NCBI GenBank assembly: GCA_002269645.1 | Contig: NIVC01003337.1 | Location: 1-64,000 of the forward strand | Source: Macrostomum lignano | Lineage: Eukaryota | Length of the DNA: 64,000 nucleotides | Direction of reading: 5' to 3' | Shown: in pieces, positions 23,840 to 51,390 of the stretch | Layout: each line of letters opens with the position of its first letter | Numbering within the stretch: the first letter of the stretch is position 1 | Notes under the pieces: model-generated | What the model was told of the DNA's origin: nothing | What the model saw: the letters and a program-made list of their open reading frames with translations, nothing else | Databases searched by the model: none | Translations under genes and position numbers: made by a program

Positions 23840-23872
<33 letters not shown>

Positions 23873-23917
23873 GTCTGTCTGCCTGTCTGTGTCTGTCTGT
23901 CTGTCTGCCTGTCTGTA

Positions 23918-23956
<39 letters not shown>

Positions 23957-24097
23957 GCCTGTCTGCCTGTCTGTCTGTCTGTCTCTGTCTGTCTGCCTGT
24001 CTGTGTCTGTCTGTCTGTCTGCCTGTCTGTGTCTGTCTGTCTGTCTGTCTGTCTGTCTGCCTGTCTGCCTGTCTGTCTGTCTGTCTGTCTGTCTGCC

Positions 24098-24143
<46 letters not shown>

Positions 24144-27100: not shown

Positions 27101-30100
27101 GCGCCCGCTCCGAGCTGCAGCGCCTGCTCGCCCGTTTCAACCGGGTGTTCAGCAGGCAGGCGCTGCTGCTGGCTGAGCACCTGTCTGAGCAGCAGCTCTG
27201 CGGACTGCTGCTGGCCCGGCAAACTGCCTGGCAACTGAAAGCAGTGCAGGCAGAGCTGAAGTCCTGCCCGGGCGGCAAGCTCAGGCCGCACCTCATCGCT
27301 CAACTGTCGGACGAGTCTCGGACCAAGTTGAGCCCGCTGGCCTCCGCGTTTGTCGAGGTGAGAGGGGAGAAGTGAATGCTAAATATGCATAATGCTGTAG
27401 TCAGGGTTATAGGCTACTTATAGAGCTACCTTCTCAACTGGTGACCCTTTTTGCCAATTTGTCACCTATTTTTGTCAACTGTTATATTGCACGGACTTCG
27501 ACAAAGCAGAAGCATTTTCATTGTTATTACGAGCTATTAGAAACTGGCTTTTTTAAGTGTCTGAAGCAAGCGTTAAAAACCACGATTGCCTGCTCTGGCA
27601 TCGGTCAAGAAGATCCAAGAGAAGAGACTTAATGCGTCATTGCACACGCGTTCTAAAAACATCATTTCAGGCCCTGAAGCAGTGGATTCCAGAGGCCTCC
27701 GTCACTGAGAAGATCTTTCGGCCGACGCCTCCACCGCCACCTCCACCGCCGCCACCTCCGCCGCCACCTTCAGCAGAAGCCGCCGATGAGGATGTCGAGA
27801 ATCCTCCGGGACCGTCCGCCAAGTCTCGGAAGTCCCGCGGCAAGTCGCGCCGCCAGGCCGCCCAGTCGGCGGGATCGGCCGCGATGGAAGCTGACGCTGA
27901 TGCAGACGTGGCGCTGGAGCGGCAGGTGAGCGGACAGCTTGTTCTCACGAGGGGTGACTTTATATAGTAATGAACTTGTCTGCTTGGTAGGACAATAATG
28001 AGTACGGAAGCGATTGTTTGTTGTTGAAATACCATTTGAAATGTCAGTTGTCTGATTGCAGTTGCACAGCACCCTGGTGCAACGCCTTCAGGACTTTCCA
28101 GTTTTAAATGATGCGCTTTGTCCGAGGTGCAACTCAAAACTTCTAAATCTCAAGTGACTCTGGGGCGACTCGTGTGACTATTTTAATGACTCATAAAACG
28201 ACTGCAATGCGATGGAGAAGCGACTGTTGAGTCGCGAGTGGATCACGTCAGTTTCATAGTCGTTAGTCGTGAAAAAAGTCACTCAAAGTCGTTGTTTCAG
28301 CTCTTAGCTTTCTACTAACTCAGTGGTAATAATAATAATTGATTACACCTGCCCCAATTGGGCCAGATGTGCAACCGACAGCTCAGCCGCAGCTATTGCG
28401 CGGCGCATCTGAAGTCTGCGTACGGCTGTTCAGTCCAATGACTGGGGGGTCGCCACACACAGCCTCAATTACCCCATTTTACAACTGGGTAAACTGAAGC
28501 ACGAGTGGGATTTGGGAATCGAACTCTCGACCTTCAAGTCGTGAGTCCGATGCCCCATCCACTACATGCAGATGCGGTTCAGACGCAACTCAGTGATTCT
28601 ACAGCGACTTTGGCACGCCTCAGATACAACTCTACGGCTCCAGGGTCGTTTCAGAGTCACCGGCAAAAAACGCTTCAAATTGACTCTTAGAAAACTCTTT
28701 TTTACGACTTTTTGGCGAATTTTACCATGACATCTTGTTGTTTTAGAGTCTTATAGAGTCGCTTTTTTCCTACTTTACCTGTGTTGCTTGCAATAGCAAT
28801 GAAACGACTCTTAGGGGACGCTTCTTGACCTTGGTACCGTTTTCATTAGGTCATTCACCTCTATGCTAAAATCTGATAGATTGCATCGATGCATACGAGT
28901 GTAGATTTATATATCTATGTATTTCTCAGGAGCGACTGGCCGTCTTTGCCGATCACGTGGGCAACCTGGAGAAGGACACGGTGGTTCGCTTTGACTGGGA
29001 CTCGCAACAGCAGAAACAGAAGCAGCAACAGCAACAGCAGCAGCAACAGCAACAGCAGCAGCAATGGCTGGCTCCGTTCCTGGCCTCGCCAGATCAGCTG
29101 ACTTCGGGATCGGCTGCCACGGCCGCCAGGGCTGCCCAGCTGGCTGCTGTTGAGGACCTCTGGGCGCTGAAAGGCGAGGAGCGCGCGGTGCTGCTGCAGC
29201 TGGTGCTGCTGCAGGCTGCTGGTGACTGCGTGCCGCAACTGCAGGTGAGCAGGTTTGGGTTTGGGGTTGGCTGGATTCTTGGATACTTCAGATTGAGAAC
29301 TGGATGATGCTTAAAATACCAGCCTACTCCACTGCACTCCGATTCACAGAGATCCCATCCAGATGCTTAGAGATTCCACTCAGATCCTCAGATATCCCAC
29401 CCAGATTCTCAAAGATCCTCACAGATCCTCCGGGATTTTACTGAGATCCAGGTCAGAGATCCCACTCAGATCCTCAGAGATCCCACTCAGATCCTCAGAG
29501 ATCCCATTCAGATCCTCACAGATCCTTAGAGATCCCAATCAGATCCTCAGAGATCCCATCCAGATGCTTAGAGATTCCACTCAGATCCTCAGATATCCCA
29601 CCCAGATTCTCAAAGATCCTCACAGATCCTCCGGGATTTTACTGAGATCCAGGTCAGAGATCCCACTCAGATCCTCAGAGATCCCATTCAGATCCTCACA
29701 GATCCTTAGAGATCCCAATCAGATCCTCAGAGATCCCATCCAGATCCTCACAGATCCTTAGAGATTCCACCCAGATCCTCCGGGATCCCACTGAGATCCT
29801 CAGAGATCCCAACCCGCAATTTCGAACTGGCATTTGCATCCCCCAAATGCGTCACCTTTGACCCCCAGTCGGCCATCAACGACTTCTGCAGCCTGGCGGC
29901 AATGCGCCGGGAGCTTCGCCTGCGCCGCACGGCCGCCCTGCTGCGCACCAAGCGGATTGTCGGCATGACCGTCACAGGCGCCAGCATCCAGCGGGACATC
30001 CTGCGCCTGGTGCGGCCCAGCCTGCTGGTGGTTGAGGAGGCCGCCGAGGTTGGCGAGCCGCAGCTGCTGGCCTGCCTGAGTCCATCCGTGCAGCACCTTG

Positions 30101-33100
30101 TGCTCATCGGCGACCACAAGCAGCTCAGGCCGCCCACGGAGAGCCACCGACTGGCCAGGTGCTGGCCATGAGATCAGAGTCCTGATCCCGTTTCCTGATC
30201 CCAATCCCATCCTGATCCCAAATTTCCCATTCTGATCCCAATCCCCATCCTGATCCCCTTCCCCATCCTGATCCCCATCTTGATCCCCATCCTGATCCCA
30301 ATCCTGATCCCCATCCTGATCCCATTCTCCATCCTAATCCCAATCCTGATCCCCATCCTGATCCCATTCCCCATCCTAATCCCCATCCTGATCCCAATCC
30401 TGATCCCCATCCTGATCCCCATCCTGATCATAATCCTAATCCTGATCCCCATCCTGATCATAATCCCAATCCTGATCCCCATCTTGATTCCATTCCCCAT
30501 CCTGATCCTAAACCAGTTCTGATCCCCCGAACCCGCAGATACTTCGACCTGGACGTCTCAATGTTCGAGCGCCTCATCAACAACGGCATCTCCTATGACC
30601 AGCTGGCCCTGCAGAACCGCATGCGTCCGGAGCTGTCCCAGTTCCTGCGGGACATCTACCCCGGCCTGAAGGACAACCTGCCGGTGGTCACGAAGCACCA
30701 GGCGACCGCCTGCGTGGCGAAGTCGGCCTTCTTCTGGGATCACAGCGAGCCGGAGACTGGCGATCGCAGCTACATCAATAAAGAGGAGGCTGAGCGGTGC
30801 GTGGCGCTGGCTCTGTTCCTCATCAGCCAGGGTGTGGCGCCCAGCCGCATCACCATCCTGGCCGCCTACCGCAGCCAGACGGCCCTCATCAGCCAGCTGG
30901 TGCGACAGCGGGCCGAGCAGCACCAGCACCTGTTCCCTGAGTACTTTGCCAACTGGGCTAAGGGTAAGTCTGTATCGGCTGGTTCTGTTGGATTAGAGCG
31001 AGTGACCAATGCGAGTGAGATGGATGAGAGTGACATGAAGTGACAGAAATGGGAGTGACAGAGATTAGAATGCAAGAGATTAGAGTGACAGAGATAGAAG
31101 TAACAGAAATGAGAGGTACAGAGATAGAAGTGACAGAAATGAGTGTGACAGCAATTGAGGTGACAGAAACGAGTGTGACAGAGATAGGAATGACATACTG
31201 TAGATGAGAGTGACACAGATAACAGAGAGTGACAGAGATAAGAGTGACACAGTTGATAGTGATAAAGTCATGAGAGTGACAGGGATGAATATTAACAGAA
31301 GAGCAAAAACAGATAAAGTGGGACCAAGCAAAGCAGGACTCAGGCAAGGTGCATTGTGAATCTCTGTCACTCCAGCCGGCGGTTCAGCAGGCGCGGCAGC
31401 CGCAGGGGAAGCCGAGGAGGCTGACGATGAGGCGGTGGAGAGCCGCGGGCCGCCCATCCTGGCGCACACGGTGGACGTGTACCAGGGCGACGAGAACGAC
31501 TTTGTGATCGTGTCGCTGGTCCGGTCAAACGAAGAGTGCACTGTCGGCTTCCTCAAGGAGGTGAGCAGGCGGTGCGTGGCGCAGTCGCGGGCCCGCTGCG
31601 GCTTCTGGCTTATCGGCAACGCCGACTGCTTGACCAAGGAGGTCGGGCACTGGCGCACCCTGCTGAAATCGATGCGGGAGGCCGGCTGCGTGGGCAAGCA
31701 GCTGCCGCTGCGCTGCGTGCTGCACCCGGCCGAGACGCAGCTGGAGGCCTCGGACGCCGCCTCCGTGCCCGCAGTTGGTGCCAAATTCTGCACCCTGAAC
31801 TGCGACATGATGATGGAGTGCGGCCTGCACCGCTGCCCGCTGCCCTGCCAGCCGCGCCACTCGCACGACCGCTGCGCCGTCCGCTCCGAGGTGACCCTGC
31901 CGGACTGCGGCCACCGGGCTGCGAAGCTCTGCCACCAGAGCCTGGAGGAGCTGCGCTGCTGCACCATGGTGGACTTCGCCTTCGAGGCCTGCGGCCACCC
32001 TGGCAGGAAAGAGTGCTGGCAGCCTGAGGGACAGCTGCAGTGCCTGAGGGTGAGCGGCCGGTCATCTCACCTTTCTGCATCTCAACTGCCTGCATCTCAC
32101 CTGCCTGCATCTCACCTGCTTTGCATCTCACCTGCCTGCATCTCACCTGCATTGCATCTCACCTGCCTGCATCTCACCTGCTTTGCATCTCACCTGCCTG
32201 CATCTCACCTGCTTTGCATCTTACCTGCTTTGCATCTTACCTGCCTTTGCATCTCACCTGCTTTGCATCTTACCTGCTTTGCATCTCACCTGCCTGCATC
32301 TCACCTGCTTTGCATCTCACCTGCCTGCATCTCACCTGCTTTGCATCTTACCTGCCTTTGCATCTCACCTGCCTGCATCTCACCTGCTTTGCATCTTACC
32401 TGCCTTTGCATCTCACCTGCTTTGCATCTTACCTGCCTTTGCATCTCACCTGCTTTGCATCTTACCTGCCTTTGCATCTCACCTGCCTGCATCTCACCTG
32501 CTTTGCATCTCAACCTGCCTGCATCTCACCTGCTTTGCATCTTACCTGCTTTGCATCTTACCTGCCTTTGCATCTCACCTGCTTTGCATCTTACCTGCTT
32601 TGCATCTTACCTGCCTTTGCATCTCACCTGCTTTGCATCTCAACCTGCATCTCACCCTGCTTTGCATTGCATCTAACCTGCCTTTGCATTTCACCTGCCT
32701 GCATCTCACCTGCTTTGCATCTCAACTACCTGCATCTCACCCTGCTTTGCATCTCACCTGCCTTTGCATTTCACCTGCCTGGATCTCACCTGCCTGCATC
32801 TCACCTACCTTGCATCTCACCTGCCTGAATCTCACCTGTCTAAATCTCACCCGCCTTGCATTTCACCTGCCTTGATCTCACCCGCCTTGCATCTCACCCG
32901 CCTTGCATCTCACCCACCTGCATCTCACCTGCCTTGCATTTCACCTGTTTGCATCTCATCTACTTGCATCTCACCTGCCTGCATCTCACCTGCCTGCATC
33001 TCACCTGCCTGCATCTCACCTGCCTGCATCTCACCTGCCTGCATCTCACCTGCCTGCATCTCACCTGCCTGCATCTTAACTTCCTGTATCTCATATCTAA

Positions 33101-35428
33101 TTTTCACACATGAATATTACACCTGTATCTCACACACGATATGTATCGAAAGACCGCTGACTCAGTCAAGCATCGGCTGTTAACCCGCAGCCGTGCGATC
33201 GCGACCTGCCCGGCTGCGGCCACCGCTGCCAGCTCCTGTGCTGGGAGCGCTGCGCCCCCGAGTCCTGCGCCCAGTGCCGCGCCGATGAGGCGGCCCGCAA
33301 CGCTGAGCTGCAGGCCCGGCGCCAGGCGGCGCAGGACGAGGCGAGGCGTGAGGCGAAGGTGGAACTGGAGGCCATCAAGAAGCAGATGGACGGCTGCGTG
33401 AAGCGGCTGGAGCTGACCAGGGACGGCGAGTCAGCGTCAGAGTTCCTGGATGTTGAAGACCGGGTGTTAAAGTACATCAGGGCTGAGCACAGCTGGTACC
33501 CCACTGTGAATCGTGTGGAGAAAGTGCTCAACGCGTCGCTAAAGAGGAAATTTCTTAGCTACAAGAGCACCTTAATGTTTGAGCCGGACAGGTAATTAAC
33601 AAGTCAAATTGCATTTTGCTTTTTGAATTTGAATCACCCTACTATTAGTAGAAATGCAAACATTTCATAGGATTTTATAGATTTTCGAATTACTCTACTT
33701 TCAGTAGAAATGCAAACATTTCATAGGATTTTATAGATTTTCGAATTACTCTACTTTCGGTAGAAATGCAAACGCTTCATAGGATTTTATAAGATGTTCG
33801 AATCACTTTACTTTCAGTAGAAATGCAAACATTTCATAGGATTTTATAGATTTTCAAATTACTCTACTTTCAGTAGAAATGCAAACGCTTCATAGGATTT
33901 TATAAGATGTTCGAATCACTTTACTTTCAGTAGAAATGCAAACATTTCATAGGATTTTATAGATTTTCAAATTACTCTACTTTCAGTAGAAATGCAAACG
34001 CTTCATAGGATTTTATAAGATGTTCGAATCACTTTACTTTCAGTAGAAATGCAAACGCTTCATAGGATTTTATAAGATGTTCGAATCACTTTACTTTCAG
34101 TAGAAATGCAAACGCTTCATAGGATTTTCTAAGATGTTCGAATCACTTTACTTTCAGTAGAAATGCAAAAATTTCATAGGATTTTATAGATGTTCGAATC
34201 ACTCTCTCAGTGGCAGTAAAAACATTTTAGATAAAATATTCGGTATTAAAATCATACCGCTAAAAGCAGGAATACATGGTCGTTCTTAAAAATAATTTGC
34301 TTTCCTCAGATGCGAGCTGAAATTTCACGGCACCTCCGCTGAAGGAGTGGAGGGCATCATCACCAGCGGGTTTCGGCTTCCCGAGAAGGCCGGCATGTAT
34401 GGAGCTGGGATCTACTTCGCCTCGGACTCGTCCAAGAGTGCCAGAGAGATTTACACCAAGGGCTCCAACATGCTGCTACTGTGCGAAGTGCTGCTGGGTG
34501 AGTCTTCTGCTTTTGAATTTTACCTGTTATCGGACTAATTGGTCGAACTCCCTACTCCCTGAGAATCTCCCTATAATCCAGCATGAGAATCTCCCTACTT
34601 TAGCCTGAGAGTCTCAATTCAGCATGAGAATCTCCCCATTCTACTCTGAGAGTCTCAATTCAGCATGAGAATCTCCCCATTCTACTCTGAGAGTCTCAAT
34701 TCAGCATGAGAATCTCCCTCACCCCAGGCCGCAGCCTCACGGTGCTGGGTGCCACAAAGGACACGTACAACTTCAAGCGGATGCGGCAGGAAAAATATGA
34801 CTCCCTGTTCGCGCCGCGCAACTCCCGCGCAACAAACGGCGTCATGAACGACGAATTCGTGGTGTTCGAACCGGCGCAGGCCTATCCAAAGTACATCGTG
34901 CACTACAGCTGCGTTGACGGCTCCGCGGCGCTCAAAGGGCTGCCGACCGCCCTAGCGGAGGGCGTCACCCGCATCAACCGGCCCCAGCGCCACGAGGTCG
35001 ACCAGAACAACCCGCTGTTCGTGTACTGGTCCCTTGTGAACTCAAGGTTCCTGTCTGGCTTGACTACTCACGGGATCACCGTCACCCAGGTGCAGGTCAA
35101 CCAGAACTCCGACCTACTCGCCAAGTTCGAGGCCCGCCGACTGAAGGCTGGGGCGGCTGCGAAGGCTCCGTACGGGTTCACCTGGGCAGCAGATCAGCGT
35201 GAGGCCGACTCGGTGATGAAGAGCGGCTTCTCACCTGCCGCGGTGTCTGGGCTGAAGTTCACGCAGCTGCCGGACCTGCGCGCAGCTGTCGGCGGGCGGC
35301 TGGCGCTGCTCTGCAAGCTGCTGCCCAGCAGGCATGCCGGCAGCGGAGACCCCGGCGCACCCTGGAGCATCGACAGTCCCGACTGCGCCTATCCGAGGTA
35401 CGCCATCCACTTCAGCATGGCTGGATGA
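22208..35428 (+). CDS. ZNFX1-like: ZNFX1-like SF1 (UPF1-like) RNA helicase with an N-terminal cold-shock domain, NFX1-type zinc fingers, a C-terminal PARP catalytic domain and a degenerate second PARP fold. About 1822 aa, 13 exons.
   Basis: Exons 22208-22696, 23311-23816, 24229-24630, 25717-26278, 27082-27357, 27671-27925, 28930-29244, 29869-30158, 30539-30963, 31391-32049, 33191-33591, 34310-34497 and 34728-35428. All are GT-AG, phases agree, total 5469 nt. Motifs: [123 protein letters not shown] and YPKYIVHY. Confidence 0.92.
22740..23300. repeat. C-rich intronic minisatellite (cctccaccccttactg / ccgcctccacccctca), intron 1
   Basis: Tandem copies of a ~16-nt unit. Confidence 0.9.
23825..24145. 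repeat. (gtct)n microsatellite, intron 2
   Basis: Direct reading. Confidence 0.95.
24670..25635. repeat. 34-nt minisatellite (tctgattagggattaacacctgcatgatgggatc), intron 3
   Basis: About 28 tandem copies. Confidence 0.92.
26330..27060. repeat. cagtgacaca-based minisatellite with higher-order duplications, intron 4
   Basis: Direct reading. Confidence 0.88.
28326..28586 (-). mobile_element. Full-length tRNA-derived SINE with a 9-bp target-site duplication
   Basis: On the minus strand: tRNA-like head (gtagtggatggggcatcggactc...gagagttcgattccc), core, structured tail and an (att)n end. aactcagtg is duplicated at 28317-28325 and 28587-28595. Confidence 0.85.
29340..29810. repeat. cagatcctcagagatcc-type minisatellite, intron 7
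   Basis: Direct reading. Includes a ~180-nt higher-order duplication. Confidence 0.88.
30180..30520. repeat. 12-nt minisatellite (gatccccatcct), intron 8
   Basis: Direct reading. Confidence 0.9.
32065..33080. repeat. catctcacctgcctg / catctcacctgctttg minisatellite, intron 10
   Basis: Direct reading. Confidence 0.92.
33640..34200. repeat. ~57-nt AT-rich minisatellite, intron 11
   Basis: About 10 copies of tagaaatgcaaacatttcataggattttatagattttcgaattactctactttcag. Confidence 0.9.
34550..34720. repeat. Short tandem repeat (ctctgagagtctcaattcagcatgagaatctcccc), intron 12
   Basis: About 4 copies. Confidence 0.8.
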
Positions 35429-35869
35429 ATTAAAACACTTGCGGAATCTCCCAGTGATTAAAATACGCGTTCATCATGTTTGCCTCTTTGTCACTAAATA
35501 TACCGGTGGGGTATATGTGTCTGTATTTTATTATTAAACGAATGGACCAATTTATTTGCCGATTTCATCGTGCTTATAAACCGACATCTGAATCTGGCTT
35601 CTTTTCGAAACTTTGCTTGGAACAATGGTTATGACGTAAGATGGTTGCGGCACCGGAGTCACAGACAGTCATTTGGGGGTTTTGCGTGCACCAATATTGG
35701 CCGGGTGGGTTTGGTGGAGGACCAATTAACCACCGATTGGCACAGAAAGTGTACAACTCAGTGTTGCTACCCCAGCGAATTTTAATCGCTGTACGATTTT
35801 AAGTAGCTGAGTGATTTTTTTATCTTCAGCTATTTTCAGCGATTTTTTATTCTGGGCGTTAGAATCTTA

Positions 35870-36660
35870 AGATTCTGGGATAAGAATCGTGAGATTCTGG
35901 GGGTAAGAATCGTGAGATTCTCGGGGTAAGAATCGTGAGATTCTTAAGGTAAAATCGTGAGATTCTAGGGGTAAGAATCGTGAGATTCTGGGGGTAAGAA
36001 TAAGAATCGTGAGATTCTGGGGGTAAGAATCGTGAGATTCTGGGGGTAAGAATCGTGAGATTCTGGGGGTAAGAATCGTGAGATTCTGGGGTAAGAATCG
36101 TGAGATTCTGGGGTAAGAATCGTGAGATTCTGGGGGTAAGAATCGTGAGATTCTGGGGGTAAGAATCGTGAGATTCTGGGGGTAAGAATCGTGAGATTCT
36201 GGGGGTAAGAATCGTGAGATTCTGGGGGTAAGAATCGTGAGATTCTGGGGGTAAGAATCGTGAGATTCTGGGGGTAAGAATCGTGAGATTCTGGGGTAAG
36301 AATCGTGAGATTCTGGGGGTAAGAATCGTGAGATTCTGGGGGTAAGAATCGTGAGATTCTGGGGGTAAGAATCGTGAGATTCTGGGGGTAAGAATCGTGA
36401 GATTCTGGGGGTAAGAATCGTGAGATTCTGGGGGTAAGAATCGTGAGATTCTGGGGGTAAGAATCGTGAGATTCTGGGGGTAAGAATCGTGAGATTCTGG
36501 GGTAAGAATCGTGAGATTCTGGGGGTAAGAATCGTGAGATTCTGGGGGTAAGAATCGTGAGATTCTGGGGTAAGAATCGTGAGATTCTGGGGTAAGAATC
36601 GTGAGATTCTGGGGTAAGAATCGTGAGATTCTGGGGTAAGAATCGTGAGACTCTGGGGGT
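35870..36660. repeat. 22-23-nt tandem array (gtaagaatcgtgagattctgggg)
   Basis: About 34 near-identical copies with no spacers, lying between two convergent genes. Confidence 0.93.
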
Positions 36661-37325
36661 AAATTATATTTTTACAAGTATATTTTTAAAGTAATTTGAT
36701 GTGTCAGGAGAGCATTCATATTGATTCATTAGACGATCAAATGGCGGAATACTACGAAAGAAAATGTTTAAATAAAAAACCAAAGAAATCTATTATAATA
36801 TAGTGCAGAATACTGTTTCTACAAATTAAACTAAACCGAAGTTATTGTTAGAAATTTGCGGATTAGATCCAAGAAAAGATAAACGATGATGACTGAGACC
36901 AAACAACAGCTGGGATATTGTCGTTTGTTAATGTAACAAATTTCAAACTGTACAAAAGCTGTCAGTGTGGTAAAAAACGATGACGTAATCATTGTCAAAA
37001 ATTAGTCTTTAGGAAGGATAGCTGTCTGGTCAAAACTCTGGAAAGTTCATTTTGAACTTTTGAAAAATGATTCTGAACTCAGGATACTGAATGTCTTTTT
37101 ACAACGAAAACACCAGGTCTCAATAGCAAATCCTAAATTAAGGCAGGTCAAGAGTCAATACGGCAAACTTGTCAGAGTAGTGACAGCGTGCGATTGTTGA
37201 TACTAAAGAAGACATTATTCCGGCCATTTCATCTGCCAAGCATCAGACGCAAAAAAATAATTATAAGTATCCTCTTTATCATGGGTAAATTAAACTCCTT
37301 AATTAGCGGCGGCAGCTTATTTGGT

Positions 37326-40300
37326 TCATTCTTCTGCAGCTTTCTTTATTGCTCCTCCCGCTGCCCCGCTGGCTCGAATCTGGGTGATTTCTTCCACTGA
37401 TTTCTTGGCGTCTCGCAGAAGCCTCGCCCGAGTCTGCCAGTCTCGCTGCTCTTCTTGCTTTTGCTTATTTATCAACTCTTCAACGTACTCATCGGCAGTG
37501 CTTAGCAGGTACTGGCGATGGGCCAGCTGCTCAAGAACTTGCATGCATTTGTGCATTTTTACTAAGCTGTTTGATAAGTGCTCCCTGTGTTCGTCTATAT
37601 CGACTTTGAGACGGCTTTCGACCTGCTTTCTACGCCGTTTACCGGGATACCGCCGTGTGATGGTTTCCGCTGTCCTCTCTTCTTCTTTCTCGACGGTTTC
37701 TAAATATTTCTTGCCTGGCTTATGCTCAGAGAGACTGCAACCTCCTGGGCAGGCTGTGCAGTCGATTTCCTGCTGTGGCTGATCTCTCCAATGTGCCGAT
37801 CGCTCCAAAATGCAGCACGTCATGTTGCACTTTTTGCAATTTATAGCAACTTGGTTTCTGGGCAATTCTGAATTTGAGTTTTGCATTATTTTCACCAGGA
37901 ATTTAGTTTTGCCTGGGTTGCCAGCTGTTTTACTGACTAGCTCTAGCTCCTTCTCAAATATGGCAAGTTTTTCCAAGGTTTCTGTCAGCTCCTTCATCAG
38001 GAGTGTAAGGGAAACCTCGAGTTGTCTTGGATTACTTGGGCTGTCTTTGGCTTTTTGCTTCGATCGGAGACGCACACCGATTCGTGTCTTTTCCATCGCT
38101 TCAAACAGCTCAAGGTAACTGTGCTCATCCTCATCCCAGGCTCTCGCCTTTGCATCCAGCTGCATCTTCTCTTCTAGTTTTGTTTTTAACGAGAGATTTG
38201 AATCCCGCTTCGAGCTACCACTGTCGACATTATCAGAGTACAGAACTCCACTATTGAACTTGAAAAACTTTCTGTATGCCACGTTGCCGTCTTTGAGATC
38301 GGGGTGTGCAAAATTCGCATATCCTCCAGTGTAAGTCAAAACTGGCAGCGAGATCTGTTCGATTTCCTCGCCGAACAGTGACGTAATTTCTTTAAAAACG
38401 GTTATCTGAGAATCGGTACGTTTGTATTGCGATGCCTTCAGGACGAAGCAAATGCCGTGCAACAGTCCGGTGACGCCTGGCACTGCAGAAGTTCCTCCAT
38501 CGCCGAGCACCTCTGCGATTTTCTTATGAATTTGATCTCCCTCGTTCGGGTTTAGTCTGTTTCTAAATTCTGGCGCAACGATAAGTGTCAGCGGGGTGTC
38601 CATAGCGCTCCTGCAGCTTCCATCGGCACCGCCAGTGTTCACAGGGAATAATGTGTACACAATTATGTCTCTTTCACCTCTTTCTTGAGCCAGCCAGAAC
38701 CGGAAGTTTTGGGAATACGGAACTCTGTAGAATGCATTGGCGATTCCGTTAATAAACTCGGTCAATCCCGAGTCTTCTAAGCCGACAACGAGAAGAATCT
38801 TTGGAGGCATGACGAAAGCTCCGCCTTCAGCAACGCTGAATGACACTGGACCGACGCTGGAGTCATCATTTTTCTTCACCACATTCAGATTGAAAATATC
38901 ACCGGAAAATTTCGCTCCACTCCCAGTTGAGTCTTTGTAGCTGTAGCTGTCTCGAACAAATTGAAAGCAACAAGTTGCATCTGTCTCGGCTTCTGGGATG
39001 CTGAGCTTGACTGGGCCCATTGAGTCGGTCTGCGGATTCCAGTTAGAGACTATTCGGCTAGTTTCGTTTTGTAGCCCCTAAAACTCGAATGAGCACAAAA
39101 TGATTTTTGCTTTCCCTACGGAATTTATTGTGCTCTTAAACCTACAAATGCGCTTTCATTCCTACTCTCAAGTTTCTTAGGACGATAGCTAATTGAGTCA
39201 GTTTCCTGGCTGTGGGGTTTGGCAAATATCTGCAAGAGATTAACAAGAGCGACTTACAGGCGCTTTGCAGTCCACTTCAAAATACGGCGTGCCGTCGTAT
39301 CTGAAATTTAGCGGACATTGACTCTGTTTCCAGGCGCCATGATACTGGCTTACTAAAAATTACAATTCTTTCTATGATCTGCAAGCTGAACGCATTCTTA
39401 TTTATAATTTACTTCTTATAGCGATCCCACTTGACAGTTCGAATGGAAGTCTAATCTCCTGACTCACTTGGCAAGCAACTCTGCCAGCTGAAATGCCTCG
39501 GCTTTGAATTGCGCCAAATCCAATGCAGTTCTGCCATACTCGTTCCTCAGGCTCCAATCGGCACCTTTCCCCAGCAGGATGCTCCCGACTTCTGAGGCTT
39601 TCGCAGGAGCCTCCACGGCGACCGCCATGAGAGGCGTGCTGCCATAGATGTCCTGAAAATTTACGGAGGCTCCTGCGTCTATCAGGGCGAAAACGGCGTC
39701 CGAGTTGCCGCTGCGAGCTGCCACATGCAGGCAGCTCAACGACGCAGTAGAGGCGCATGTTGGGTCTGCCAGTGACAGCAGCTCCTGCCACAAATCCGTG
39801 TTGCTGCAGTTGATATTGTTGGCGGCCCACATTGCTGCGGTGAATCCATTAGGGTCAGGCAGGTCGCAGTTGTCACGATTGGCAGCTCTAAGCAGGCCCT
39901 CGAAGTCACCAGCTTGAGCCAGCTGCTCCAGCCTCTGCCGATCTGCCTGCTCCTGCAGTGGAGAATGCGGTGCAGTAAGGCCTGTCCTTTTATCACCCCA
40001 CCTGTCAGGCACTCACCTCACTAGTCAGACCGCTGATCAAACCGTACTTATCAAAGACGAGTCTCATCTCTCTGAATTGAATTTGTGACTGAAAGTGTGA
40101 CTATTGATGATTTCAACATTTACATCTATCTATCAGTAGTACAAACAACTAACCGTTCAATGAGATTGGCTATGGCACCTTTGGCGAGTGAAAACGCTGT
40201 TTGACCGTGCTTGTCTTTCAGTCCCAAAAGCTGCTCTCTCTTGGAGTTGCCTTTACTCAGGCATTCATTGTACTTAGATTGCCGCAGCTGGTGCAACAGG

Positions 40301-40749
40301 TGCTTGGCACACCTCCACGAATCAGCCCGAACCGCTTCCATCAGGGGGGTCGCGCCCTGCTCGTTCTGCAGCCACTTGCTCTCGAACGGCAGCAGTACAA
40401 GAATCTGGAGGTTGTCAGCTCTGGCTTCCAGGTGAGCAGCCGTGTCGCCAGCCCGGTCGGTTGCAAAAGGGTCAAAGTTCTGAGCAAATAAGTACATTAC
40501 GCACTTTTCTGTTCCGGCAGATTTCTGTTGCTGAGCAGTTTCGGCCAAACGCATGAGGACAGTCTTCTTCTTACTTGCTTTCAATAAGTGCACTATCTGT
40601 TGGAAGTCACCTTTGTTGACTAACTCGACCAATTTCTGCAAAATTAAAATGTATCAATGTCAGTTCTATTTTCTAGCATGTTGACTAGACAATCAAGGAA
40701 CAAAAATAAATCAAATTACTCGTGCTTCATCGAAACCTCCTTCAGCCAT
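37326..40749 (-). CDS. Ankyrin-repeat protein fused to a degenerate AIG1/septin-like GTPase domain with a Cys-rich and coiled-coil C-terminus. About 950-976 aa.
   Basis: Exons 40720-40749 (MAEGGFDEAR), 40154-40635, 40017-40071, 39468-39952, 39258-39300, an optional 39146-39229, and 37326-39077. All are GT-AG with consistent phases. Ankyrin motifs GDTAAH, GATPLMEA, GFTAAMWAA, GSTPLMAVA and GRTALDLA. The GTPase-like part has ILLVVGLEDSGLTEFINGIAN, GICFVLKAS, ITSLFGEEI and NCKKCNMTCC..CTACPGGC..SEH. The ankyrin-GTPase join is predicted, not observed. Confidence 0.75.
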
Positions 40750-42579
40750 TGTTAATCTGGTGTCAAAAATCAGTGCGCTGATGGCCGCTGGACTGTTTCT
40801 TGGAAAGCGTCCAGACCGGTACGCCGGTTCGCGGTGTGACTCAATCGAATCCTGCGGTTGTGGTGCATTTTGAGTGAATGGAGTTAGTAGAAACTAGCAG
40901 TCTGGTGCCCCCCGCTTGGGGGCGGCCAATAGGCAAGGGACAAAAATTATTCATGTGAATTTTGTTTGCGTCGACATCTCAGCAACTCCCCTGTAAGTCT
41001 TGACATCTCAACAATTCCCCCCTCGTAAGCCTTGACATCTCAGCGATTAACTCCTAACAAGCCTTGACATCTTAGCAATTCCCTCCAAGCCATCTACGAG
41101 CTTTTCTTACTTATTTACCTAGATGGTCTGCGATCTGTAATATGTCTAGATTAAATTAACAATTGCAGGCATCAAGCCCAGTGGGGCTGCATCAGCTGTA
41201 TAATTTATTTTACGATTATATATTTTACATATTTAGCATTTACCAGTAACTTGGTTATTAAGTTTATTTCCTAAGGCAAGCACTTACTTATATTAGAACA
41301 AATTTTGCGTAAAAAACTCACCTCGAAGCTTTTAGAATTATTCAAATATATATTAAAAAGTACGAGCTTACAATTATAAGTATCGTAAACCTGTTTTGCT
41401 GGCGTTGATAAAATTGTTTTTGCCTGGCCGTTTTAACTGGCAGGCATTCTCAGCATATATTTGTAGTGCTCTGAGAACAATAACTTTCTCAAACTGCCCG
41501 ATCTCTAAAGAGTAGCTGTTTAGTTTATCGGCACTTTAACTTAACTCATAAGTCTAAAACTAGTCATGAGAGCATAGCTGCCTACTGAAATGAGACCTGG
41601 GGTGCCCAAGGGTGCAAAATTAACAATAGCAAGTTTGTCTGTGCACTCATCAGTCTAAGTCAAGCATTTTGCATCAAAATAACTGTGTAAACAATTTATG
41701 AGAGTCATGTGACAACTCTTTTATGAGCAGCTGAGTCTACTGGACGGGCAGTGAGCTGTCAACTGTCTCGAGAGAGAGACACAGCCTCGGCGATATGAAT
41801 AGATGGCGCGTACATCTTTTTGGTAAGCCATGTCTGACTGCCGTACAAAGTTGTTTAGGAAACTGAACTTCCCAAAGGCACATCAACTGCATTATAGCTT
41901 AAAGCAGTTTTTACAGCAATTGAAACATTGCATGGCTTCAAGCATTGAAACGACAAAAACGTGCATCCAACGTTCTTTAAAGTCGCTCGGGGCGGTGAAA
42001 GGGCAGTGCGAAAGGACCAGTGGCTCCGACTACGATAGACATAGCTCAACCCTTTGCCAAGGCACCCTGCGCCTATGTTTGCTCTATGATATCATAATTA
42101 AAAATGGCAACTCTTGAAGGTTGAAATCTAGAAGACTGAAACTAATAGTGTCACTGTTGTTCGGCAGATGATAGTTCATAATCAGAATTCAGTGGAGTTC
42201 TCACCAATTGCAAGTTCCCCGCCTTCATTGATTTTGATCATACAGGCCTCGTCAAGATCCCCGTGTTTAGCATCGTTGGTCCAGGTGCTTTAAAAAATGA
42301 GCTCCAACCAGGTATTTACATGTAAATGTTAGATTCAGATAACATAGCTAATCGATGTATTTCAGTCGTGAATAATAAATATCTGAGCTAGAAAACTGTT
42401 TTTACGGTATGAGATGCAGTTGACGGAATCGAGAATTGTGCTCGGCTTCCCTTAAGCCTACGGGCGCCACAAAGGTGCTCTGATAACAGTGCCCCTGGCA
42501 TCCTAGAAAACTCGAATTGTTAAACAAAAGCTCAGTACATTTCAACCAGTTTTATTTAACTTTCCTCTGAAGTTAATCG

Positions 42580-46810: not shown

Positions 46811-48760
46811 CTACGAAATTCCCACCTTAGGATTTGAACAATGGCAGCAAGCTAGTGGCTTGAGACAACAGAGGGGCTGTCGGCTTCTGGAGGAAGTCCT
46901 TGTACTTCTGGTACACTCTCGTCTCGTGAACTTGAACCACTTGGCAGCTTGGACTTTAATCATGACACGGCGTGAGAAAACAGAGAGGCTTTTGGCTTCT
47001 GGAAGAAATCCTTGTACTTCTGGTACACTCTCGTCTCGTGAACTTGAACCACCTGGCCGCTTGGACTTGAACCATGACCCGGCTTGAGACAACAGAGAGG
47101 CTTTCGGCTTCTGGAAAAAATCCTTGTACTTCTGGTACACTCTCGTCTCGTTCTGCAGCAGCACCTGCATCAGTTCATCTTTCTTCAAGTTCTCTGCACG
47201 GGCCGCGAGCTCTCTAATATCCCTAAGCTGCTGGATTCGCTCAGGGTATCCTTCACGCTTATTCATGTCCTCCGCCTCAATCAGCTTGTCAATGTAGTCC
47301 ACCTCACTCAGCGGATCAGGCTTCAGAGCAATCTCATGCAGTCTCTTAAGGCACTTTGTGCTCTCGCTAATCAGCTGCATCACTTTGGCTTCGGTTTGCA
47401 GATAATCTCCGTAGACTTTTTCCGCTAACTGGCTGGCTGTCAACAGCTTGCCCTGCGCATCGGTGTAGCGGTTCTTCAACTCTTCCGAAGTCTTCGTGAC
47501 GGATTCCCGTACAAAAATGAACCGATTTTGCCTGTTCTTGTGCACCGACCACACACAGTGCCCTGGGCATTCGCGGCATATGCCATCAGACATTGCAACA
47601 CAGCCTGCTTTGTCACTGTCTACCGGAATAGCACAAGGATAGTGACAGGTTCGGTTGCAGTTCAGACAGTTTGTGATGTAATGTCCTGGAGGAATAGCTT
47701 CTTCTACCCTATTTTCCTCAACAACCGTGTAGGTGAAGTTCTTGTTCCGGTTCAGATCTTTTCGATGACTTTTTATTACATCTATCTCACGCTCCAGTTG
47801 GTTAAGAGCGCTGATACCTAAGTGGATCTCGTTCTTGATGGCAATTAAGTGAGTTTGCAATCTCTGACGCTCAGTCAGAACGTCTTTTGTTAGAGTCAGA
47901 CTTTTGGCCTCTGTCTTGTTTAACTGAGAAAAGAAGTCCTTAAAGCTCTGCATTCCCACGTCCCAGAACATCTTGTTGAACATCTGGCTCTTGGAATCCA
48001 TTTCGTGGCTTTTGGCAAACACAGCCGAATTGTTGAACTTGGTGTGCGACTTGTACACGATACCCGCTTCTTTGAGCGACTCCAGTACCGGTGGGACGCT
48101 AGCGTCGGCGGAAGTGATCATGACAAAGATGTTATCGCCAATGTCCTTCCCAAAGAGGGAAATTATCGCGTCATAGACGGATCGCTGGGTCGATGTCAGC
48201 CTGGTGACACCAGACGGCACCACGAAGCCCACAGCGTCCAGATGATCGACGCCAGCTGGAGAAGAAAAGAACTCCCGAATTCGAGCTACAATCTTCTTCT
48301 TCTTCTTCTTCTTCACGATGCCGCCAGTGTCACCGAACCCAGGAGTGTCCAACAGCGTCAGAGTGAATGGCTGCTGGCAGCCCTCGCGGTGATGAAATGT
48401 ATAGGAGGTGACCCACTGTGTCTGGCTTTTTGAATGAGACTTCTGCTGGCTTTTTTCCTTGGAATCGGGGCTAATACTGAAGCGATAATTGTCTTCGAAC
48501 TTCAGTCCAAAGTTGTAGTTGACCATTGAATTAATCAGCGACCCAGTTTCACCAACCATCATGATCACCTTCTCTTCAACAGCTGAAGTTGGATCTTTGC
48601 GACCGAGCTCCATTTTCCGAACCTGGTATTTCTCATCGCATGCTGTCTGGTCCATTTGCAGTTCGTACTCAACTGGCTCTGCATCGCTGAGCTTCCGCGA
48701 AGAAAGCAGCAATTCATATTTTAGTTTATCCACAGAATTTGGCTTGACTTTTTGACTCAT
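46811..48760 (-). CDS. AIG1/septin-like (TRAFAC) GTPase-domain protein with a Cys-rich motif and coiled coil, P-loop truncated. 649-aa single-exon ORF.
   Basis: KVIMMVGETGSLINSMVNY, SQTQWVTSY, LLDTPGFGDT, AVGFVV, SLFGKDI, ITSAD, FNNSA, NCLNCNRTCHYPC..C..CPGHC..SVH and LHEIALKP. An acceptor-like tttctcacttcag lies just upstream of the ATG. Confidence 0.85.
   Translation of the reverse strand: MSQKVKPNSVDKLKYELLLSSRKLSDAEPVEYELQMDQTACDEKYQVRKMELGRKDPTSAVEEKVIMMVGETGSLINSMVNYNFGLKFEDNYRFSISPDSKEKSQQKSHSKSQTQWVTSYTFHHREGCQQPFTLTLLDTPGFGDTGGIVKKKKKKKIVARIREFFSSPAGVDHLDAVGFVVPSGVTRLTSTQRSVYDAIISLFGKDIGDNIFVMITSADASVPPVLESLKEAGIVYKSHTKFNNSAVFAKSHEMDSKSQMFNKMFWDVGMQSFKDFFSQLNKTEAKSLTLTKDVLTERQRLQTHLIAIKNEIHLGISALNQLEREIDVIKSHRKDLNRNKNFTYTVVEENRVEEAIPPGHYITNCLNCNRTCHYPCAIPVDSDKAGCVAMSDGICRECPGHCVWSVHKNRQNRFIFVRESVTKTSEELKNRYTDAQGKLLTASQLAEKVYGDYLQTEAKVMQLISESTKCLKRLHEIALKPDPLSEVDYIDKLIEAEDMNKREGYPERIQQLRDIRELAARAENLKKDELMQVLLQNETRVYQKYKDFFQKPKASLLSQAGSWFKSKRPGGSSSRDESVPEVQGFLPEAKSLSVFSRRVMIKVQAAKWFKFTRRECTRSTRTSSRSRQPLCCLKPLACCHCSNPKVGIS
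46861..47150. repeat. 112-nt tandem triplication inside the 3' end of the GTPase ORF
   Basis: Units start at 46861, 46973 and 47085 (tgagacaacagag...tccttgtacttctggtacactctcgtctcg). Confidence 0.9.
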
Positions 48761-49099: not shown

Positions 49100-49750
49100 T
49101 CTGTCTCTGTATTGGGGCTGTCTATGAGTTGGGGGCTGTCTTTGAGTTGGGGGTTGTCTATGAGTTGGGGGCTGTCTTTGAGTTGAGGGCTGTCTATGAG
49201 TTGGGGGCTGTCTATGAGTTGGGGGTTGTCTATGAGTTGGGGGCTGTCTATGAGTTGAGGGCTGTCTATGAGTTGGGGGCTGTCTATGAGTTGGGGGCTG
49301 TCTATGAGTTGGGGGTTGTCTCTGAGTTGGGGGCTGACTATGAGTTGGGGGCTGTAAATGAGTTGGGGGCTGTCTATGAGTTGGGGGTTGTCTAAGAGTT
49401 GGGGGCTGTCTATGATTTGGGGTTTGTCTATGAGTTGAGGGCTGTCTATGAGTTGGGGGCTGTCTATGAGTTGGGGGCTGTCTATGAGTTGGGGGCTGTC
49501 TATGTGTTGGGGGCTGTCTATGAGTTGGGGGTTGTCTATGAGTTGGGGCTGTCTTTAAGTTGGAGGCTGTCTATGAGTTGAGGGCTGTCTATGAGTTGGG
49601 GGCTGCCTATGAGTTGGGGGTTGTCTATGAGTTGGGGGCTGCCTATGAGTTGGGGGTTGTCTATGAGTTGGGGCTGTCTTTAAGTTGGAGGCTGTCTATG
49701 AGTTGAGGGCTTTCTATGAGTTGGGGGTTGTCTATGAGTTGAGGGCTGTT
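49100..49750. repeat. 18-nt minisatellite (gtctatgagttgggggct)
   Basis: About 35 tandem copies. Confidence 0.93.
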
Positions 49751-50634
49751 TACTCTAAACAGTAGGCTGTTTATAGTTGGGATTTCCATCACCAGTAAAA
49801 ACAAGGGGTAATTGTTTCATAGTGGAGCAATGTGCCACACTTAAAGCAGCAATGCAGAAGCAAATTCTGCCGAACTCACCGACTGTGCAGGCGATTCTAT
49901 GCTGATTTTAGAGTCTTCAGAAGCGCACCATTTAACCAAAGTTAAAAGCGCGCTTCAATTGTTCAATTGAATCAGTGCCCACCCCGTTTTATACGCTAGT
50001 AGATCCACGACGTTCCTTATTTTTCTAACAAGAGATGCAAGTGCTATTTTTAGAGAGGGATTTAGAAATGAAGATATTTGGCGGAGGAGAGATTGATAGT
50101 TTGGAGAGTACATGTTCTCTGTACATGTAGCTTATTGAAGTTCCCTTTTAATTTTGCTTTGCGTACTCACGGTACTCAAGGTAGGCTATTATGAGTCGAA
50201 AAAGCAGAAACAAAAATGTGCGTTTTAAAAGCTGAAGCTATTATATTTGTTTTCCCTACTGTGGAAGTTCCTCATTGGAACTGGAACTGAAACACGCCAC
50301 GTCTATTTTTGAAATGATAGTACGCTTGCACTTTTGCTAGCATCGGAACGGAGCAACCCGGCTATGCACAAAAATTAAGGACACGGATTAATGTTTTCTT
50401 GAGCATCTTTTCAAACAAGAATCAATTCGCCAAGCCCACTGGACCGGCGAGATATTCAACGATGCTACCAGAAGAGCTGCTACTCTCATGCATGGTGTAA
50501 GAGCTTCAATACAGCCTGTGCGTCAATCAGCACTGCGCCTCAGTGCGGACATCAAATTGCATCCTCCAAAAGCTAATTCGTGTTTTTGAATCAATGACAC
50601 CTAGATATTCTTATTTAGGGGTTCGGCATTTTAG

Positions 50635-51390
50635 GGGTGCCATTTCATGGGTGCCATTATATGGGTGCCATTACAGGGGTGCCATTCCAGGGGTGCCATT
50701 ACAGGGGTGCCATTACAGGGGTGCCATTCCAGGGGTGCCATTCCATGGGTGCCATTCCATGGGTGCCATTACAGGGGTGCCATTACAGGGGTGCCATTAC
50801 AGGGGTGCCATTCCATGGGTGCCATTACAGGGGTGCCATTACAGGGGTGCCATTACAGGGGTGCCATTACAGGGGTGCCATTACAGGGGTGCCATTCCAG
50901 GGGTGCCATTCCATGGGTGCCATTACAGGGGTGCCATTACAGGGGTGCCATTACTGGGGTGCCATTACAGGGGTGCCATTCCAGGGGTGCCATTCCATGG
51001 GTGCCATTACAGGGGTGCCATTACAGGGGTGCCATTCCATGGGTGCCATTACAGGGGTGCCATTACAGGGGTGCCATTACAGGGGTGCCATTACAGGGGT
51101 GCCATTACAGGGGTGCCATTACAGGGGTGCCATTACAGGGGTGCCATTACAGGGGTGCCATTACAGGGGTGCCATTACAGGGGTGCCATTACAGGGGTGC
51201 CATTCCATGGGTGCCATTACAGGGGTGCCATTACAGGGGTGCCATTACAGGGGTGCCATTACAGGGGTGCCATTCCATGGGTGCCATTACAGGGGTGCCA
51301 TTACAGGGGTGCCATTACAGGGGTGCCATTACAGGGTTGCCATTACAGGGGTGCCATTACAGGGGTGCCATTACAGGGGTGCCATTCCTG
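50635..51390. repeat. 15-nt minisatellite (ggtgccattacaggg)
   Basis: About 50 tandem copies. Confidence 0.95.

Follow-up and report, generated by a model that had tools for sequence, protein, structure and literature searches.

An ankyrin-repeat gene of Macrostomum lignano carrying a degenerate septin/GIMAP-like GTPase module

Septins and GIMAPs act through homo- and hetero-oligomers that are mediated by their G domains, and in ROCO proteins such as LRRK2 and DAPK1 ankyrin repeats are placed N-terminal to a Roc G domain within a single polypeptide. Herein, we describe a gene from Macrostomum lignano in which ankyrin repeats precede a degenerate GTPase-like module; the gene lies at positions 37326-40749 on the minus strand of a 64,000-nucleotide (nt) stretch of DNA (contig NIVC01003337.1 of assembly GCA_002269645.1, positions 1 to 64,000; hereafter the window). 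GIMAPs, septins and Toc34 have been grouped in a GIMAP-septin-like clade (Leipe 2002, as cited in PMC7159879), and GIMAPs have been linked to immunity (PMC12373286). Septins have repeatedly become pseudoGTPases while keeping their role in assembly (Hussain et al. 2023, PMC10731463), and the pseudoGTPase domains of p190RhoGAP are described (PMC5593906) as using a G-like fold as a nucleotide-free structural module.

The closest counterparts of the M. lignano gene are intact members of its own family, exemplified by PAA80612.1 (P0007), PAA54514.1 (P0010) and P0006, which contain the same colinear module of ~470 amino acids (aa) and share with it the elements INGxxN, a YT strand, FKFN, CxxCxxTC...CxxCxxxCxxxxH and the LxxxA...Y..LI helices. 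Unlike these proteins, the product of the gene has an N-terminal ankyrin partner that is unique among the 150 best relatives, it has lost G1, switch I, G3 and G4 along with one Cys and one His, and its gene has five introns whereas that of P0007 has none. Human GIMAP2 and GIMAP1 (2xto, 2xtn and 3v70) provide the best fold matches to the G domain, with E-values of 4e-6 to 1e-4 and template modelling scores of 0.41-0.52 on the target, but in contrast to GIMAP/AIG1 proteins there is no AIG1 match, a C-terminal extension of ~300 aa is without a solved relative, and the nucleotide site is degenerate. Resemblance to septins takes the form of Pfam Septin matches in 45/46 relatives and of septin G domains among the fold matches, the latter being a likeness at the level of fold only. 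Compared with septin pseudoGTPases the loss is far more radical, including the P-loop Lys and switch I, and the protein is ankyrin-fused and not a septin orthologue. It likewise differs from ROCO proteins, as it has no Roc, COR or Ras-type match and belongs to a different GTPase clade with a different evolutionary origin.

Gene model and ankyrin part

The interval contains three open reading frames (ORFs) that a first-pass annotation, made from the sequence alone, had interpreted as the pieces of one hidden fusion gene. We found that the three ORFs do belong to a single six-exon gene, the corrected model of which is identical at 932/932 residues to PAA51901.1 (P0005), a 932-aa hypothetical protein and the product of the GenBank gene BOX15_Mlig003485g1, whose span is exactly that of the interval. 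The fusion was not hidden, however, as GenBank already lists it under the label of a hypothetical protein, and the gene model is thus not new.

All five introns have GT..AG borders with compatible phases at each junction (Table 1). Exon 2 ends with CG at 40154 and is followed from 40153 by a donor, CG/gttagt, that overlaps the apparent end of the ORF, while exon 4 ends with AA at 39468 and is followed by AA/gtgagt from 39467. Two micro-exons of 55 nt and 43 nt both restore the reading phase exactly; the first-pass annotation had placed these donors, micro-exons and phases correctly on the minus strand. The micro-exon peptides, REMRLVFDKYGLISGLTSE and YDGTPYFEVDCKAP, are found in the public models of the gene and of its 87-91% identical copies, which indicates that the micro-exons are more than a product of chance.

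The boundary of the last exon required revision. When this exon is begun at 39077, as originally proposed, the six-exon model comprises 948 codons with no interrupting stop and ends in a GTPase exon of 1752 nt. The frame is indeed open from 39077, but the real exon starts at 39029 and is 1704 nt in length. The acceptor at 39077 was ruled out, as the 16 extra residues that it implies are absent from all four public models; in P0001, P0002, P0003 and P0005, ...EVDCK[AE]P is followed without a break by [TS]D[SA][ML]..., in agreement with the acceptor at 39029. Exon 6 defined in this manner encodes, in order, a pre-G segment, a degenerate G domain, a helical hairpin, a beta-rich Cys segment and C-terminal helices.

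The GenBank annotation was generated from a genome-guided transcriptome, in which StringTie/TACO was applied to RNA-seq data together with a mapped de novo assembly, and its gene boundaries were cut at trans-splicing and poly(A) evidence (PMC5730564). The deposited six-exon coding sequence (CDS) is therefore transcript-derived, and given this deposited model we are highly confident that the ankyrin part and the GTPase-like module are encoded by one six-exon gene.

The N-terminal 365 residues form two ankyrin-repeat blocks joined by the micro-exons. A Pfam scan assigned Ank_2 (76.2 bits, cut-off 27.3), Ank (55.9 bits, cut-off 21.1) and Ank_4 (45.7 bits, cut-off 22.7) to the protein, these ankyrin families being its only Pfam matches, and comparison of the ankyrin part with the PDB returned ankyrin and DARPin structures with E-values down to 2e-37. 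Among the 150 best relatives of the module, ankyrin repeats occur only in P0001, P0002, P0003 and P0005, all of which are from M. lignano. No paper on an ankyrin-fused pseudoGTPase was found in our literature search.

Several copies of the gene are present within M. lignano. P0002 and P0003 exhibit the same architecture and the same micro-exon peptides as PAA51901.1; the three proteins are 87-91% identical overall (9-13% protein divergence), with full-length ORFs of 921-932 aa and no internal gaps in the module. A second genomic copy, L001 (NIVC01002448.1), is ~97.6-97.9% identical over the region and has identical micro-exons, with 0 differences in exon 3. The most variable part between the window and L001 is exon 4, where 16/485 nt differ (3.3%; 9-10 of the changes are nonsynonymous, depending on how they are counted), compared with 3/551 nt in the introns (0.5%) and 1/1704 nt in exon 6. 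Several of the variant residues in exon 4 match states found in P0002 or P0003, and this pattern suggests either gene conversion among the copies or diversification of the ankyrin surface. For the ankyrin part as a whole, the ratio of nonsynonymous to synonymous substitution rates (dN/dS) between the window and L001 is 0.35, a value derived from only 22 changes.

The GTPase-like module and its family

The C-terminal 567 aa, encoded by a single exon, are a derived copy of the ~470-aa module of an uncharacterised animal GTPase family, in which a G domain is followed by a helical hairpin, a Cys-rich beta segment and a helical bundle. An exhaustive HMMER (phmmer) scan covering 1.84 billion cluster representatives identified relatives in 781 clusters at E<=1e-3 and in 330 at E<=1e-10, most of which align to query residues ~75-552 in one stretch as the C-terminal part of proteins of 364-3261 aa. 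When 46 family members were scanned against Pfam, matches were obtained to Septin (45), AIG1 (42), MMR_HSR1 (41) and fn3 (31), as well as to the SNTX-type thioredoxin Thioredoxin_11 (17), Stonustoxin_helical (16) and MACPF_SNTX (12); the Septin and AIG1 counts are at E<=1e-3, and the best Septin E-value is 2.4e-32. In other members, the module is preceded by SNTX-type MACPF, FN3 or pyrin domains, the last being exemplified by the fish protein P0006 (Scomber japonicus 'septin-1-like'), where a pyrin domain is followed by the GTPase module. The named sources comprise M. lignano, the coral Porites, the shrimp Palaemon, the annelid Owenia and the fish Scomber, and the named relatives are labelled hypothetical, uncharacterised or "septin-1-like". 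The closest intact paralogue is P0007 (PAA80612.1), a protein of 1211 aa in which MACPF_SNTX, stonustoxin-helical and FN3 domains precede the GTPase; the module is 37% identical to that of P0007 and 21-29% identical to those of the other relatives compared. Like P0007, at least 12 of the 46 scanned members combine a domain of the pore-forming type with a septin/GIMAP-like GTPase, an architecture on which we found no paper.

The first-pass annotation had described the module as AIG1/GIMAP-related. This description is adequate at the level of the clade, where GIMAP2 and GIMAP1 are the best fold matches, but the family members match Septin at least as well as AIG1, and the protein itself matches neither: the AIG1 HMM (hidden Markov model; PF04548) gave no match to the 948-aa model even at E<=1, the Septin HMM (PF00735) gave none in the fusion protein, and no Roc, Ras or COR family was present in its Pfam scan. 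Similarly, sequence searches of the PDB with the module and with its paralogue gave no significant match, the best being septin-1 at E = 0.33. The family motifs GxTGxGKTTLIN, DTPGFGDT and TFAD look, in our judgement, more septin-like. As our literature search found no paper on a family of MACPF-FN3-septin-like GTPases, what is new relative to the literature searched is a large, animal-wide and unnamed septin/GIMAP-like GTPase family whose members are often fused to MACPF, FN3 or pyrin domains.

In a separate observation on this family, P0155 (UniProt A0A1I8FTE7; 1288 aa), which falls in the same 90% cluster as P0010, is labelled with a G-protein-coupled-receptor domain and is probably an artificial fusion. 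For this reason, we regard the UniProt A0A1I8... models as weaker evidence of gene structure than the GenBank models.

We then compared the nucleotide-contacting motifs of 113 canonical modules (112-113 per column set) with those of four ankyrin-clade sequences. In the canonical relatives, the P-loop Lys, the switch-I Thr, the Asp and Gly of G3 and the Asp of G4 are 97-100% conserved. The G1 columns of the family are G in 112/113, T in 108, G in 111, G in 112 and K in 110, with a following T in 109, where the ankyrin clade reads G-L-E-D-S-G-L-T-E; the P-loop Lys has accordingly become Leu and the central Gly has become Asp. The G3 columns are D in 113/113, T in 109, P in 113, G in 113, F in 106, G in 110, D in 112 and T in 106, and in the ankyrin clade the Asp is replaced by Val and the Gly by Glu. 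Together with the deletion in switch I and the altered G4 (Table 1), these comparisons bear out what had been noted from the sequence, namely a G1 without Lys, a missing G2 Thr, a DTPG that has become VAPE and a modified G4. Among full-length modules, only the ankyrin clade is without both G1 and G3; losses of the P-loop Lys elsewhere are sporadic and were seen in P0018 from Palaemon (GSTVSGNTT), in P0060 (GATGAGTST) and in a second paralogue within the window. The replacement residues in the dead motifs are the same in P0005, P0002 and P0003 apart from one T/A difference in G1, which places the loss of the nucleotide site before the divergence of these copies. Judged by these motifs, the protein very probably cannot bind guanosine triphosphate (GTP), and we infer that it cannot hydrolyse GTP; by sequence it is a member of the family by descent and not a functional GTPase member. 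In the literature searched, we encountered no account of this member, in which all nucleotide-contact motifs are gone and the remainder of the module is kept.

To this we can add the predicted fold. An AlphaFold2 model of the 567-aa module, built on an alignment of 15 sequences, has a mean predicted local distance difference test (pLDDT) score of 67, with blocks of the G-domain core at 70-89, and contains the alternating beta-strands and helices of a G-domain core. The top Foldseek matches of this moderate-confidence model in the PDB are GIMAP2 (E 4e-6), GIMAP1, septin 3, septin 2 and Toc34, with the GIMAP2 and GIMAP1 matches having E-values of 4e-6 to 2e-5 at a probability of 1.00. The structure prediction that had been proposed as a check thus still yields a G-domain fold, which the model predicts to be retained despite the lost motifs. 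A separate model of the C-terminal 292 aa (pLDDT 71) consists of a helical hairpin, a beta-rich Cys segment and a helical bundle.

The family also has a metal-like Cys/His motif, C-x2-C-x3-C-H-x2-C ... C ... C-x2-C-x3-C-x-W-x2-H, whose 8 Cys and 2 His are each present in at least 109 of 112 sequences. The first-pass annotation considered this motif to be kept, which is true of 7/8 invariant Cys and 1 of the 2 His, but one Cys and one His are deleted: the His after the third Cys falls in a 3-residue deletion and the fifth Cys in another deletion, and the Trp has become Leu. In P0003, one more Cys is gone, having been replaced by Trp.

Table 1. Features of the gene and its product, with positions in the window. 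A slash marks the border between exon and intron.
Feature	Position	Strand	Details
Exon 1, 30 nt, MAEGGFDEAR	40720..40749	-	ATG at 40749; donor gtaatt; N-terminus identical in PAA51901.1 and paralogue P0002
Exon 2, 482 nt, first ankyrin block	40154..40635	-	Acceptor ttttgcag/AAA at 40635; Ank_4 residues 52-92, Ank_2
Exon 3, 55-nt micro-exon EMRLVFDKYGLISGLTSE	40017..40071	-	Acceptor aattcag/, donor /gtgagt; peptide in P0001, P0002, P0003, P0005
Exon 4, 485 nt, second ankyrin block	39468..39952	-	Acceptor cactgcag/GAG at 39952; Ank_2 264-352, Ank 262-290
Exon 5, 43-nt micro-exon YDGTPYFEVDCKAP	39258..39300	-	Acceptor atttcag/, donor /gtaagt; peptide in all public models
48 nt, in-frame and open, intronic in the deposited model	39030..39077	-	Models P0001, P0002, P0003, P0005
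Exon 6, 1704 nt, 567 codons and stop, whole GTPase-like module	37326..39029	-	Acceptor ccgcag/ACC
Degenerate G1/P-loop GLEDSGLT, residues 448-455	38760..38783	-	Family G[AE]TGxGK[ST]
Switch-I deletion site, ~10 residues, S-Q-T (G2 Thr) gone	38670..38675	-	Thr in 111/113; gap in all four ankyrin-clade sequences
Degenerate G3 VAPEFRNR, residues 516-523	38556..38579	-	Family DTPGFGDT
Degenerate G4 TYTG, residues 597-600	38325..38336	-	Family TFAD; Asp in 110/113, here Gly
Partly eroded Cys/His motif, C763 to H801	37722..37838	-	Beta-strands predicted around the segment

Proposed origin and role, and alternative explanations

The gene encoding P0007 is intronless, 3636 nt in length and located at 8001-11636 of L003 (NIVC01000573.1), and the segment that follows its FN3 domain (F.G.IF.L) aligns with the first residues of exon 6. 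The simplest reading of the origin of the ankyrin gene would therefore be one of capture: an intronless MACPF-FN3-GTPase paralogue would have contributed its 3' half, which ended up behind ankyrin exons and was joined to them via a phase-0 acceptor, so that ankyrin repeats took the place of MACPF and FN3 at the N-terminus. Having lost the P-loop Lys, switch I, G3 and G4, the captured module would be nucleotide-free, and what is left over would be a G-like scaffold with the C-terminal helical/Cys module of the family. A protein of this kind may serve as an adaptor or regulator that does not depend on nucleotide. Its ankyrin repeats would bind a partner protein or ligand, and the C-terminal helical/Cys module, possibly along with a remodelled G face, would enable it to co-assemble with GTP-competent paralogues, for example P0007, P0010 and P0004, or to cap them. 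By analogy with the systems described above, we put this role forward tentatively, as a possibility with somewhat less than an even chance of being correct. The combined reading, comprising the gene structure, the inability to bind GTP and an adaptor or regulator role, we regard as moderately probable. The suggestion of the first-pass annotation, that the protein may be a sensor, a scaffold or a dominant-negative partner, is likewise a hypothesis.

Whether the gene is a maintained pseudoenzyme or a copy in decay was addressed by a relative-rate comparison of its lineage with the closest intact paralogue, P0007, using the family consensus as the outgroup. The G domain has accumulated 44 unique changes in the ankyrin lineage and 17 in P0007 (p = 0.0007), while the C-terminal half has 40 and 29, respectively, which is no excess (p = 0.23). 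As the excess is seen in the G domain alone, it is there specifically that constraint seems to have been relaxed, and the designation of the module as a pseudo-GTPase in the first-pass annotation is backed by the alignment, by the predicted fold and by this acceleration.

Several points weigh against a maintained and functional protein. No orthologue outside M. lignano was found in homologue, profile or exhaustive HMMER searches, so that the conservation attributed to the gene holds among the M. lignano copies but not across other species, and is a matter of within-species copies only. Conservation within the family reaches at least 90% in 77 columns, of which just 34 have the usual residue in this protein, and the Cys motif, as far as its sequence indicates, is eroding. 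The family residue is kept in 5/19 motif columns versus 29/58 elsewhere, which is a trend only (Fisher p = 0.11), and a degeneration limited to the nucleotide pocket was accordingly ruled out. The L001 copy has a 1-nt deletion in exon 2, in a CC dinucleotide at 9880-9885 that corresponds to ~40459 in the window; its GenBank model, PAA57762.1, is consequently truncated to 824 aa and starts at an internal Met. Exon 6 of L001, the sole second DNA copy, differs from the window by the single change noted above and is uninformative for dN/dS. The neighbouring paralogue at 46811-48760 looks like a decaying copy. No structure in the PDB proved to be related to the model of the C-terminal 292 aa (best E = 1.4), which hence offers no lead as to mechanism, and the locus tags Mlig003485 and Mlig023044 were mentioned in no paper found.

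These points bear most directly on the possibility that the gene, although transcribed, is a relic turning into a pseudogene, that is, a partial MACPF-FN3-GTPase duplicate behind ankyrin exons that has lost its function and is drifting, with the dead motifs as signs of decay. Such a relic would account for the restriction of the gene to M. lignano in all searches, for the loss of about half of the family-invariant positions across the whole module and beyond the pocket, and for a Cys motif that is partly lost and in P0003 reduced by one more Cys, and it would sit well with the frameshifting deletion in L001, with the P-loop deletion and internal 112-bp duplication of the unannotated adjacent paralogue, and with a genome that is highly redundant (PMC5730564). 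However, three copies that have diverged by 9-13% at the protein level keep ORFs of 921-932 aa, a gapless module and the same dead-motif residues, where by a rough estimate each copy would be expected to have gained several stops and frameshifts had it drifted neutrally to such divergence. Only the G domain shows a rate excess, the C-terminal half being no quicker to change than its counterpart in the intact paralogue, and the G fold is still predicted; moreover, the assembly is PacBio-based, and the L001 deletion, which affects a CC dinucleotide, may reflect an error in it instead of a real frameshift. We consider decay of this kind unlikely. That separate products are made instead of, or beside, the fusion, namely an ankyrin-only protein through intron retention and a pseudo-GTPase through spliced leader (SL) trans-splicing at 39029 with an ATG at 39020, is a prospect we view as decidedly improbable. 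In M. lignano, 38.8% of genes are trans-spliced and transcriptional units often contain multiple genes (PMC5730564), an ATG 9 nt downstream of the 39029 acceptor opens a 564-aa ORF, both ankyrin ORFs reach stop codons upon intron retention, and the UniProt A0A1I8... annotation includes at least one suspicious fusion in P0155. On the other hand, all six exons are joined in frame in the GenBank CDS, which is transcript-derived, the peptides encoded by the micro-exons are conserved, the Met at 39020 is a Leu in P0002, where the fusion is kept nonetheless, and a stand-alone 564-aa product is not on record by exact look-up in the protein collection.

It is also conceivable, but in our view extremely improbable, that the module has a non-canonical way of binding a nucleotide or some other phosphate ligand, and would then be a GTPase in a locked state and not an empty one. 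Some pseudoGTPases, including certain septins, retain bound nucleotide (PMC10731463), and two Gly of the P-loop, the first and the last, persist together with the Thr that follows. Against this, with the P-loop Lys and central Gly changed to Leu and Asp, switch I deleted, the Asp and Gly of G3 changed to Val and Glu and the Asp of G4 changed to Gly, every element that contacts phosphate, Mg2+ or guanine has been lost.

Both RNA interference and transgenesis work in M. lignano (PMC5730564), and a naturally nucleotide-dead member in this animal provides a handle for separating the GTP-dependent functions of the family from those of C-terminal assembly. The gene also adds another example to the growing list of pseudoGTPases in the septin/GIMAP clade, which for specialists is a useful pointer and not a surprise. 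The MACPF and pyrin partners of the family, along with a helicase/PARP-like gene next to the locus, hint at an immune setting. A broader proposal is that the 781-cluster family represents undescribed animal innate-immune effectors, in which the GTPase with its Cys-rich/helical module would control the assembly of pore-forming domains of the SNTX-type MACPF kind or of pyrin domains with their death fold, and that the ankyrin pseudo-GTPase would be a lineage-specific, nucleotide-independent regulator or decoy that co-assembles with GTP-competent paralogues via its C-terminal module, thereby delivering to the complex a partner or ligand bound by its ankyrin repeats; we think it quite unlikely that this proposal holds.

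Neighbourhood of the gene in the window

A second member of the family is present in the window as a 649-aa ORF at 46811-48760 on the minus strand, which is 21% identical to the exon 6 module. Its G3 (DTPGFGDTGG) and full Cys motif are intact, while a 12-nt in-frame loss removes GK[ST]T from the P-loop (GETGS/LINS, with the slash at the site of the loss). The ORF also contains an (AAG)8 poly-Lys run near 48300 and, at its 3' end, a tandem duplication of 112 bp x 2.6 at 46857-47151. Its AIG1 score of 23.2 bits is below the 27-bit cut-off. The GenBank record has no gene call for this ORF, and an exact look-up did not retrieve its product; from these sequence features, it is probably a decaying copy.

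On the plus strand, an adjoining gene at ~25685-35428 corresponds to a GenBank model of 1827 aa, the ORFs of which match the Upf1-like helicase families AAA_11 and AAA_12. The last of these ORFs (34706-35428) weakly resembles the end of the PARP catalytic domain, with an E-value of 0.0035 and a score that does not reach the cut-off. Together with the two septin/GIMAP-like genes beside it, this helicase and PARP-like gene may represent an immune-type cluster.

Further from these genes, a MOB1/phocein exon (Pfam E 1.5e-60) is found at 14801-15403 (+) and a reverse transcriptase of the long interspersed nuclear element (LINE) type (RVT_1, E 1.5e-16) at 19388-21126 (+). The window is rich in simple repeats. 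Tandem arrays are located downstream of the ankyrin gene at 35849-36662 (23-bp unit x 35.6), at 40973-41083, ~220-330 bp upstream of its start codon (32-bp unit x 3.6), and at 49114-49749 (18-bp unit x 35.4). Repetitive long ORFs that are open in multiple frames on both strands occur at 10350-11250, 22650-24200, 26540-27300, 31900-33200, 50540-51450 and 62950-63640; their translations include GAITGVPLQGCHYR units, and they look like simple-sequence or minisatellite DNA, not genes.

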